From Zygnema circumcarinatum SAG 698-1b (Eukaryota > Plantae > Zygnematophyceae), in assembly GCA_037447605.1 (NCBI GenBank), contig CM074823.1, positions 1,488,001 to 1,552,000 on the forward strand: a stretch of 64,000 nucleotides of DNA, in the 5' to 3' direction. The notes under the pieces were generated by a model. The model was not told where the DNA came from and searched no databases. It saw nothing but the letters and a program-made list of their open reading frames with translations. Made by a program: the position numbers and the translations under genes. Below, one piece after another: positions 48,501 through 51,482 of the stretch (its first letter is position 1; each line of letters opens with the position of its first letter).

Positions 48501-49077
48501 TGGCGTGACGAACTGGCGACCTGGTCCGGCCAACCGAAACCGTTACCTCGCGTCCAAAATAGGTCTAATGACCTATGACCGACGACTAATGACCAACCAT
48601 CGGTGGCCCGCGGCCTGACTTATGACCAATGCGTGACCTGTAGTCACCTTCCTCGGCTCACTTCCGCGTCTTCTCCCGCTTTTTGGAGTCATTTTAGGGA
48701 TAACCTGTTCAGCAAAAAATGAAAACAAACAACTTGCAAACATGAATGACGCCAAAGTACAACATGCGATTTTATTTCCTTTTTCTTCATGTTGTCCACT
48801 TCCTCCCCACCCATCTCCTCTCTACCTCACTCTCCGCCTTCCTTGTAGACCCACCCACCCACCCACCCACCCACCCACCCACCCACCCACCCACCTCCCT
48901 CCCTCACTCCAGCCATCCCTCCCTCCCTGTCTCCCTGTCATGCTAAGCCATGCCATGCCTTCGAGCGTCAGGCCTACGTTATTTCACAGCTAGAACCTAC
49001 CCCCGGTCCCCATTCTGATCAACCTCGAGTTGATTTTGAAGTTGTTGCACATCCAACATGTGATCGCAATTCAGAGT

Positions 49078-51482
49078 TTAAGGCACGTCCGGTCTGTTCG
49101 CCGCATTCTGGGCATTCGTAGCATTGCCTTTCATGAACGTTGCCGGAACACCCATCGCAGTTTCTAGCGCCAGTGCGCCTGAAATGCAAAATCATTCCTT
49201 AGTCAGATTCTGAAAAGACAGTCGAAACTAAAAGGAAGTTAACAAGAAGAACAGCATTCAAGGCATGGAGATTCAAAGACCTCCCTCCGAGGGCCTTACT
49301 ATCCCTGTCCTTTTCAGTCGCTGACCCTCTATTGGGTAACTTTAACTCACCCAATCACTCACACACCCTCCTCTCCCCACCCCCCATTCGCCCTCTTCCT
49401 CCCATCCCTCCCACACCTTCCTCTCTCTCTCTAACCCTGCCCCTCCCTCTTCACCTCCCTCTACTCGCCCTCGTCCATTCTCATCGCCTCTCGCCTTCTC
49501 TCTCTCGCCTCTTCCACTCCTATCAATGGGGCCTTACAAAAGTACAGAATCTACGTACGTGCTTTTCTTCGGCGATAAAAAATGCAAAAAATGATGACCG
49601 AGACGAGGCCGAGGAAGAGCAGCACGCCGCCAACCACCACTATGACAATCACTACAATAGAAATTCCACCTTTGTTTGCATCTGCGCAATAGCAGGAGGC
49701 CAAGCATACGAACCATTAGCAGAATTCCGAATTTGGGTGTGCTTCAGAGAAGAAAAAAAAAGGGGCTTCTGGAAGGTCCTGGAAATGCGTAGGATTCGTG
49801 TCCTTTTATTCGTAAGAAAATAACAGGTGGCTATAGAAGCTGCAGCCAACGAGCGGAAGATTGAAATCCCAAGGAAGGACTCGTGGTGGATGAAGGGAGC
49901 GAAAGCGAGAGACGGGGAGAGATAGAGAGAGGCGGACGCGGAAAAAACGAGATAGAGAGAGGAGATACAATAGAGAGGAGAGTGAGGTGAGTAAGGGGAA
50001 GTAGTCAACGAAAGAGAGAAAGATGAATAGCCAAGGAAATTCAAAATTTTTGAAGGCAAGGTTCGTTAATATACCCTCTTTAATGCTTACAAAAAATTAT
50101 TAATGCTTATTGCTTATCACTGGATCAAGGAACACTTTGAAATTCGAATGAAACACCGCAGATATACTTCACTTTGCTATCAAGGAAACAGAAAAATTTA
50201 TGGAGCATGTGAAGAGAAAAATATCATACCTTCCCTTTGAAGGGCGCATGCTTTCGTTTCCATGTCGACTAAGGGATCTACAAGGAATTTCTGGCGATCA
50301 TTTCCGTAAATGTTCCAGGAATCTGCATGCGCGGCAATGACGAGATCGGTTCAGAGATCATCTTGCAAAACGCGAATGGATTGAGGACCTGCTGCGGAAT
50401 CTTGAAAGAAGTCGATCAGAGCTTCTGGCAGAGGAAGTAAAAATGTAGTGACCGAGATCAATGAAGCTTATTCAAAAAAAAAAAGAGGAAAAAAAATAGA
50501 AGAAAAGGGTTAAAGAATATTTAAAGTACAAGGAGAAATATGTACCGTGTGACAAGGTAGAGTTATTAGCCGAGCAAGCCTGGCCGATTCCGACGAATAG
50601 ACCAGTTCTGGAAATAACCCATCCATTCTTATTTTGTCCATTCCAAATATATCTGGGGTTCGCGGCCACCGACGCTAAACCCCTCGACATTTGGTAAGTG
50701 ATGACGTCACCGAGTCGATCATTCGGCGGGCTTCGAGAGCTTGGCCAGCAATCATCATAGCAATCTGACGTGTCATGTATCCAGATCGCTCCCCTTCCAG
50801 TAATTTCTCCGCACCCGCACGGACTCGAGACCTGCATAGAGAGAGCAAAGAAGTTGGAAAGAGGGCGGAGGGGGACAGGCACGGAAATTGAAAGTCAGAA
50901 ATGCACTAATGAACTGAAAACTGGAGAGAGTATAGGAAGCGATTCTCAAATGTGCGGAAAGAGATAGAGGTGCGGGAAGAATGTGCTCACATTGACTTCC
51001 TCATTGCTCGTTAGGAACACCGTTACATCGTTATCGCCCTCCGGCACTGAGTATAAAAGACGCAACGTTTCAATGTAAACTGAACCAACAAGGATGGGTA
51101 CACTATAGTTTAGTTCTATGATGCTCGGTATGGCATATGAGTTCGTTTGGCCAAATGTGACCTTGGTAGACGCTCTAGTTCTATTCGAGTCTTTGTACGT
51201 GCCCATAATGTTCCACCACTTCCGTACAGAGGGCTCTAAGGATTGGTCTGCCTTGTCTGAGTCAAGAGAAGTCAAGAAAGCCATGACGGTCTCCTGAGCC
51301 GTTGATTTGCTTGACCAGTCTCCGATGAACGCCACGTGTACGTTCATTCCCTTCGTAAGTATTTCTCCCCCTTCGTAACTCAGATTGCTGTACGGGTCGC
51401 TGGAGAGAAGCTGGGCTGAAAGAAGGAGAGGAGAGAGGGAGAGAGAGAGGAGGAGGAGGACGAGCGGGAGGTGGACAGCCAT
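49078..51482 (-). CDS. EXORDIUM/PHI-1-like protein with a signal peptide and a C-terminal transmembrane helix
   Basis: complement(join(49078..49178,49559..49681,50230..50322,50546..50831,50991..51482)); the last exon is uncertain. Signal peptide [26 protein letters not shown]-1-like blocks: LSYEGGEILTKGMNVHVAFIG, AFLTSL..PSVRKWWNIMGTY, VTVFLTSNEEVNV, CYDDCWP..PPND..DVITYQM..LASVAANP, SWNIYGNDRQKFLVDPLVDMETKAC. These are followed by ISIVVIVIVVVGGVLLFLGLVSVIIFCIFYRRRK. Confidence 0.75.

Follow-up and report, generated by a model that had tools for sequence, protein, structure and literature searches.

A minus-strand gene on contig CM074823.1 of the Zygnema circumcarinatum SAG 698-1b assembly (GCA_037447605.1) encodes a member of the Phi_1/EXORDIUM family that is predicted to be anchored in the membrane. 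It lies within positions 1,488,001 to 1,552,000 of this contig. This stretch of 64,000 nucleotides is called the window here, and all positions given below are counted from its first letter. The gene is intact, spliced, and transcribed. Judged from its sequence, its product of about 364 residues is a kinase-less variant of the family, whose layout is shared with a few relatives and which has kinase-bearing counterparts in algae and in land plants. It is probably a type I single-pass membrane Phi_1 protein, which would act as a kinase-less receptor-like or scaffold protein. What the data show is the domain content, the intron phases, the splicing of two coding introns out of four, the lack of a kinase, and the recurrence of the same layout in relatives.

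A divergent Phi_1 domain ahead of a predicted membrane helix

The gene has five coding exons (Table 1). Canonical GT..AG ends are found at every exon boundary, and the three split codons encode D, D, and R. A long open stretch has its first in-frame ATG at 51482, the start codon, and no in-frame ATG exists upstream of it. The initial annotation had the feature end at 49019. Because the RNA-confirmed joint 49559/49178 fixes the frame of exon 5, the stop codon is now placed at 49080-49078 (TAA). In the searches described below, the exons were used singly, one at a time, and the homologue P0006 served as a full-length proxy.

Exon 1 alone matches positions 1-80 of Pfam Phi_1 (PF04674) with E 1.5e-12 and 47.9 bits (gathering cut-off 25), and nodes 15-118 of A3, a 20-sequence Phi_1 profile built during this work, with 86.8 bits. 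Exon 2 alone has no Pfam match and matches A3 weakly, but collinearly, at nodes 186-257 (10.5 bits; hhalign E 0.0065). Exon 3 matches the last 26 positions of the Pfam model (249-274; E 0.006, 16.4 bits), nodes 273-300 of A3, and, by hhalign (probability 94.5%, E 8e-8), the C-terminal end of an alignment of nine Phi_1 sequences. Since the three exons cover A3 in collinear order, the domain is read as complete yet very divergent. The cysteines of 'TSDCYDDC', 'GQACS', and 'KACALQ' align with conserved cysteine columns of A3, and two more are found at the start of exon 2, where relatives carry 'FCxxxCG'. Six ectodomain cysteines are kept, as are the WW/Y core motifs. A complete domain spread over three exons, as first proposed from the letters of the DNA, is thus recovered both by Pfam, at the two ends, and by the cysteine register.

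The divergence of the domain is also seen in the number of its relatives. Among 1.84 billion cluster representatives searched with HMMER, only 33 relatives of exon 1 were found, the best of them 33% identical, and neither this protein nor a close orthologue exists in that library. A word-index protein search with exon 1 within the mechanical open reading frame 50949-52202 (region 241-404) gave no match. At its N-terminus, exon 1 encodes a putative signal peptide, recognized by sequence features only: a hydrophobic core (Kyte-Doolittle 2.18) and small residues at -3/-1 of the cleavage site (LSA, followed by Q).

Exon 4, which begins and ends in phase 1, encodes ANKGGISIVVIVIVVVGGVLLFLGLVSVIIFCIFYRRRKA. 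A linker of about 11 residues separates the last conserved cysteine from the helix GISIVVIVIVVVGGVLLFLGLVSVIIFCIFY of about 30 residues, whose maximum Kyte-Doolittle value over 19 residues is 3.36. The helix is followed by RRRK and 34 further residues. This is the in-phase hydrophobic exon with a stop-transfer motif that the initial annotation described. The tail behind the helix (RRRKARALALETAMGVPATFMKGNATNAQNAANRPDVP, 38 residues) has no Pfam match, and being hydrophilic it would speak against a glycosylphosphatidylinositol signal. Exon 4 is similar to the transmembrane segments of P0006 and of P0021, a kinase-bearing member of the family. The window helix has no clear GxxxG motif; P0006 and L003, another homologue, have one. 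The frame of exon 4 has no in-frame ATG, and a TAA is found a few codons upstream of its acceptor. It can therefore be translated only if it is spliced to an exon ending in phase 1, and exon 3 is such an exon.

The same order of parts is found in two homologues from other sources. P0006 is a complete open reading frame of 397 residues on a 1,642-nucleotide contig of transcript length (Logan contig, SRR8128906) from a different organism. It has Phi_1 at 86-329 (E 4e-22), a helix at 344-362, FYKRR, and a 30-residue tail. Exons 1, 2, 3, and 4 of the window gene match it in order at 81-162, 210-294, 304-328, and 342-370, and the segment matching the window helix is modelled as a helix (339-370). 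L003 is a 3.6-kb AT-rich genomic contig (Logan, SRR9302961) from a third sample, with a homologous gene at 1704-3600. Its Phi_1 C-terminal exon, which is entered with 2 nucleotides after a shift of frame from the exon-2-like part (compare intron 2 of the window gene), ends in phase 1. There follow an intron of 145 nucleotides, a transmembrane exon of 102 nucleotides (phase 1 to 1) encoding GSSSSGIIIGVAIGVVLLVIIAISIIVCCCCAK, an intron of 137 nucleotides, and a tail exon opening with RRNKDK. The intron phases around its transmembrane exon, 1/1/1, are identical to those of the window gene. L003 also has a proline-rich stalk (PPNLLLPPPSSSQNYPPPPPSSS) between Phi_1 and the transmembrane exon, and a proline-rich tail. 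The 176-residue product proposed for this contig by the gene caller (2520-3050) is not a real protein: it stops under code 11. In five homologues the called open reading frames stop just after '..EV(N/S)-VS', the position of intron 1 in the window gene.

Because the exon phases match, P0006 is collinear, and L003 has the same three intron phases, the join of exon 3 to exon 4 (50230/49681) is very probable. The window gene, P0006, and L003 agree in how their parts are ordered, in having a short linker and a basic stop-transfer (FYRRRK, FYKRR, and AK-RR, respectively), and in a short tail with no domain. They differ in their ectodomains, which are only 27-36% identical, in the stalk, which only L003 has, and in their tails, which share nothing beyond the basic stop-transfer. 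A word-index protein search with P0006 returned only P0006 itself, and a feature search of the ESM Atlas with it returned only generic Phi_1 clusters (scores 0.76-0.78). A search with another alignment, A2, gave at least 16 proteins among the matches listed, nearly all of them soluble Phi_1 proteins of Closterium, which has little bearing on how frequent the transmembrane form is. In a tree of 33 N-terminal Phi_1 parts, exon 1 of the window gene is on a long branch (2.06) whose placement has no support, and P0006 groups with homologues represented by exon 1 only, including L003 (SH-like approximate likelihood ratio test 90-93, not starred). For the membrane form, both an algal innovation and an ancestral state are compatible with this tree.

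No kinase-like sequence exists in the 64-kb window, as searched by tblastn (E up to 1) using the kinase regions from P0021 and P0026, and no Phi_1 paralogue was found in it. The earlier failure to see kinase exons downstream of the gene thus extends to the whole window. Together with P0006 and L003, this supports the initial proposal of a type I membrane EXO-like protein with no kinase.

Transcript evidence and other readings of the gene

Among the runs X1 to X5, X1 is RNA-like and holds 26% of the sampled words, which is about the exon share. X2 to X5 also hold introns and look like DNA. Contigs of X1 splice intron 1 (50990-50832) and intron 4 (49558-49179) with minus-strand GT..AG ends, and the intron 4 joint is also found in X3. 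An X1 contig of 1,805 nucleotides leaves the window sequence at 48999, and its loose end matches 48673-48702 uniquely, indicating an intron at 49000-48705 in the 3' untranslated region. Only the first 30 letters of this loose end were placed downstream, so that the end coordinate, 47114, is a deduced one. The transcribed region of about 1.6 kb downstream has open reading frames with neither a Pfam match nor similarity to kinases. Of the spliced structure proposed initially, introns 1 and 4 are therefore seen in RNA, and the joint 50230/49681 lies outside the contig coverage and is set by phase and homology.

Several observations weigh against the gene being one transcript for a functional membrane protein. 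The X1 contigs skip 49593-50693, which places exon 3 and the introns on both sides of it, 2 and 3, outside the RNA coverage. The X1 depth of the 3' contig (end of exon 4, exon 5, and 3' untranslated region) is 24.4 against 6.5 for exons 1 and 2, about four times as high, although contig depth is a poor measure and cannot rank parts of a gene. X3 has only the intron 4 joint, and a separate transcript beginning inside intron 3 is possible. The stop codon is 77 nucleotides upstream of the spliced intron in the 3' untranslated region, a layout often marking transcripts for nonsense-mediated decay. It may be such a mark, or it may come from an overlapping second transcript. Finally, the Phi_1 domain is extremely divergent, with no relative of exon 1 above 33% identity and an exon 2 that is barely recognizable alone, so its function may have decayed, and no orthologue was found that would permit a selection test.

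A second contig of 61 nucleotides covers 51218-51278 in X1, X2, and X3 with three differences, including C>T at 51248. Its depth in X1 is 59, compared with 6.5 for the gene's own contig. All assembly contigs also break at 49563-49592 and at 50638-50694. These observations suggest that a close allele, or a paralogue at another place in the genome, has short stretches in common with the gene.

One way to read the divergence is that the gene is what remains, kinase-less and in decay, of a Phi_1 receptor kinase, or else a duplicate that drifts fast, and that it is transcribed with no maintained function. This would explain the low identity of exon 1, the long terminal branch (2.06), and a Pfam match only at both ends of the domain. 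The intron downstream of the stop codon, a typical mark of nonsense-mediated decay, and the deeper variant contig, which hints at a closer paralogue, are also consistent with it. We nevertheless consider decay unlikely. The five exons have canonical splice sites and keep one open frame, expression and splicing are seen, and all conserved cysteines and WW/Y core motifs are retained. There is no kinase relic downstream either, so a recent truncation is not visible.

The skipped region bears on another reading. A retained intron 3 would add 10 codons and then a stop (GMIFFSSHAP), giving a soluble form. In that case the gene would encode an ordinary soluble secreted EXO-like protein ending after exon 3, and the transmembrane exon, exon 5, and the long 3' region would belong to another, more abundant and possibly non-coding transcript from the CT-rich tract at about 49880-50000. 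The joint of exon 3 to exon 4 is found in no run, the depth difference and the single X3 joint would fit two transcripts, and canonical EXO proteins, such as P0022 and those of Closterium, terminate directly behind the last conserved cysteine. The transmembrane frame, however, has no start of its own and an in-frame stop upstream, yet it is open and in phase with exon 3. Phi_1 followed by a transmembrane segment is also the order in P0006 and L003, the latter with identical intron phases, and a chance in-phase exon with a near-perfect helix and RRRK is not to be expected in a family that has such exons elsewhere. These points make a soluble product quite unlikely. Least probable of all is that the membrane form is a precursor, anchored only for delivery or timing, from which cleavage within the juxtamembrane linker would release Phi_1 into the wall: studied land-plant relatives do act outside the cell (PMC2661892), and unconserved tails are expected if anchoring alone matters, but the linker has only about 11 residues with no recognizable processing site, and the kinases behind the same helix in relatives argue for signalling across the membrane.

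Table 1. Features of the Phi_1 gene in the window (nt, nucleotides; aa, amino acids; UTR, untranslated region)
Feature	Position (strand)	Length	Phase	Remarks
Coding exon 1	50991..51482 (-)	164 aa	0	Start ATG 51482; N-terminal half of Phi_1; three N-x-S/T sites
Putative signal peptide	51414..51482 (-)	~aa 1-23		Within exon 1
Intron 1	50832..50990 (-)	159 nt	0	GT..AG; spliced joint 50829->50989 (cut +2) in X1 contig
Coding exon 2	50546..50831 (-)	286 nt		Middle of Phi_1; five Cys; lacks CGxH and HExxE motifs of some algal relatives
Intron 2 (predicted)	50323..50545 (-)	223 nt	1	GT..AG; outside RNA-like contig coverage
Coding exon 3	50230..50322 (-)	93 nt	1 at its end	C-terminal end of Phi_1 (SWNIYGNDRQKFLVDPLVDMETKACALQRE)
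Intron 3 (predicted)	49682..50229 (-)	548 nt	1	GT..AG; separates Phi_1 and membrane-helix exons
Coding exon 4	49559..49681 (-)	123 nt	1 to 1	11-residue juxtamembrane linker; helix (~49575-49667); RRRK stop-transfer (49563-49574)
Intron 4	49179..49558 (-)	380 nt	1	GT..AG; joint 49177->49558 (cut +1) seen in X1 (one contig, depth 24.4) and in X3 (one contig)
Exon 5, coding part	49078..49178 (-)			Remaining cytoplasmic tail; stop TAA 49080-49078; 3'UTR on to 49001
3'UTR intron	48705..49000 (-)	296 nt		GT..AG; holds (ACCC)n microsatellite 48849-48895, perfect (ACCC)12
Long 3'UTR or overlapping transcribed region	47114..48704 (-)			Extent inferred from 1,591 further letters of the 1,805-nt X1 contig

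Low-complexity CT/GA-rich tracts are frequent across the whole window, and an (AG)n microsatellite of 397 nucleotides (51823-52219) is found about 340 nucleotides upstream of the start codon. Some 5 kb from the gene on the same side, positions 56259-56540 (+) carry part of a Ty1/copia-type reverse transcriptase (Pfam RVT_2, E 1.1e-18, matching just the final 92 model positions), with broken frames after it; this is a decayed retrotransposon.

Phi_1 proteins, receptor kinases, and a possible mode of action

In land plants, EXORDIUM/PHI-1 proteins act downstream of brassinosteroids to promote growth. We know of no biochemical activity and no receptor established for them. In a 2009 paper on EXO, family members are described as proteins of about 300 residues, and EXO itself as extracellular (PMC2661892). 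The initial annotation took EXO proteins to be soluble and apoplastic. This premise is incomplete. It is claimed in a 2024 preprint that Arabidopsis PHI-1 and EXO reside at the plasma membrane and bind cellulose synthases (10.1101/2024.01.24.577082). The metaRLK preprint names 'CUB/Phi_1' as one of the 20 multi-domain ectodomain combinations that occur most often in plant receptor kinases, though it is not studied there (10.1101/2023.12.21.572927). P0021, from an algal transcriptome (EukProt), and P0026, from Prunus dulcis (BBH02315.1), both have Phi_1, a helix, and a protein kinase.

Like members of the EXORDIUM/EXORDIUM-LIKE/PHI-1 family (PF04674, IPR006766), the window protein has, behind a putative signal peptide, a single Phi_1 domain taking up almost all of its predicted extracellular part. 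The motifs GG-x-(L/M)T, WW-x(5)-Y, and C-terminal N-x-x-G-x(3)-(K/R)-(Y/F)-L...C are shared, as are the cysteines. While the studied members stop just after the last cysteine, the window gene adds a helix and a tail and has four coding introns. With the Phi_1 receptor kinases it shares Phi_1 outside, one helix, and the same predicted topology, and its exon 3 shows 41% identity with the corresponding segment of P0021, the 'CALQ' end included. Unlike these, the window protein has neither a kinase nor a CUB domain.

Phi_1 is also found together with CUB, as in P0008. The land-plant protein with Phi_1, CUB, a membrane helix, and a kinase-like part, seen through the P0026 and P0008 entries, is annotated only as 'Protein kinase superfamily protein'. 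It may be the 'CUB/Phi_1' class of metaRLK. Our literature search found no functional study of this protein and no description of kinase-less Phi_1 proteins with a transmembrane segment, and Phi_1 is not mentioned in the receptor-kinase reviews examined.

Kinase-less receptor-like proteins such as TMM, CLV2, and those receptor-like proteins of leucine-rich repeat type that signal through SOBIR1 work through partner kinases. The window protein resembles them in having an ectodomain of receptor-kinase type, one helix, and a short tail. It differs in that its ectodomain is Phi_1 while theirs is made of leucine-rich repeats, and in that no partner is known for it.

If the window protein is a membrane-anchored Phi_1 protein of this kind, it may work as follows. 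A cleavable signal peptide would lead into a divergent but cysteine-retaining, probably N-glycosylated Phi_1 domain facing the cell wall. The 11-residue linker would keep this domain right at the surface of the membrane, presumably the plasma membrane, and one helix with RRRK would be followed by the domain-less tail of 38 residues. The protein would then be a kinase-less receptor-like or scaffold subunit acting through a partner. As its binding target, the Phi_1 domain would have a ligand that is secreted or comes from the wall, or the ectodomain of a partner. A linker between wall and membrane, the other role named in the initial annotation, would be a further possible function. Binding is suggested rather than catalysis because the His/Glu motifs of some algal relatives are missing. 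The tail is unlikely to carry the output, as it is not conserved among the window gene, P0006, and L003. Since the tails share only the stop-transfer and relatives place a kinase behind the same helix, a mechanism based on a membrane partner is favoured. The likeliest partner would be a Phi_1 receptor kinase of the same family, and an alternative one the cellulose synthase complex, which PHI-1 is claimed to bind in Arabidopsis (the first of the two preprints above).

A borderline fold likeness to metzincins and the place of the gene in its family

Structural models were made of two relatives standing in for the window protein, P0006 (mean predicted local distance difference test score, pLDDT, 72.6) and the Closterium protein P0041 (pLDDT 85.1), which are about 20% identical to each other. 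In an exhaustive structural search with both models, the top 25 matches were almost only metzincin-type metallopeptidase domains (145-175 residues, root mean square deviation about 4 A), with Z of 5.4-8.2, where a value of 8 or less may reflect no more than a common arrangement. Both models matched ADAM22 best, in its metalloprotease-like domain (3g5c; Z 8.1-8.2, over about 153 residues, deviation 3.5-3.8 A), and TACE, adamalysin, archaemetzincin, ADAMTS, ulilysin, and fragilysin were among the others. Foldseek gave the same families with non-significant E of 0.01-0.3. A sequence search of the PDB with profile A3 gave nothing meaningful, a lax Pfam scan of 20 Phi_1 proteins found no peptidase family, and a literature search found no paper linking EXORDIUM with metzincins.

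Some algal members keep residues that recall an active site. Closterium and Spirogloea proteins (P0024, P0028, P0030, and P0038-P0047) have 'CGWH', 'AHE(I/L/V)AEAA(T/N)DP', and 'ENADKC' around a long central helix. Their motif is HExxE (e.g., 'AHEIAEAATDP') and not the metzincin HExxH. Exon 2 of the window gene has 'YQMSRGLASVAANP' in place of the second of these motifs, and the window gene also has 'CGCGE'. The HExxH zinc-binding motif is absent from the window protein, and land-plant EXO-like proteins, like the window gene, do not have these His/Glu residues. ADAM22 is a type I membrane protein whose protease-like domain has no catalytic motif and which acts as a receptor. The Phi_1 models resemble it in fold at a borderline Z and differ from it in having no link at the sequence level, so the likeness is a structural analogy only.

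A search of ESM Atlas clusters with one of these models indicates that the Phi_1 fold is common in bacteria (Myxococcota, Actinomycetota, and Acidobacteriota; TM-scores 0.63-0.75), where fusions to PKD, He_PIG, ricin-type lectin, or PASTA modules are frequent. The one homologue noted in 2009, from Solibacter, covers a far narrower range.

From the models one could propose that Phi_1 is a remote relative of the metzincin fold. Some algal and bacterial members, among them the Closterium and Spirogloea proteins with the three motifs above and the bacterial proteins fused to PKD, He_PIG, or ricin-lectin modules, would then be active metal-dependent enzymes of wall polymers, and land-plant EXO proteins and the window gene would be 'dead-enzyme' binders, the latter being an ADAM22-like pseudo-protease receptor subunit that pairs with Phi_1 receptor kinases to sense a wall-derived ligand. 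We regard this proposal as doubtful. If true, biochemical work on the EXO/PHI-1 family, now 25 years old, would have a point to start from, and if the fold lead holds, the window protein would be a non-catalytic binder.

The window gene is one divergent kinase-less member of its family, and its individual weight is moderate. Phi_1 is nevertheless found at the membrane in several arrangements: with no kinase in the window gene, P0006, and L003, before a kinase in P0021, and in the CUB/Phi_1 kinases of land plants. This suggests that Phi_1 is a sensing or binding module at the interface of wall and membrane, and not just a free protein of the wall.

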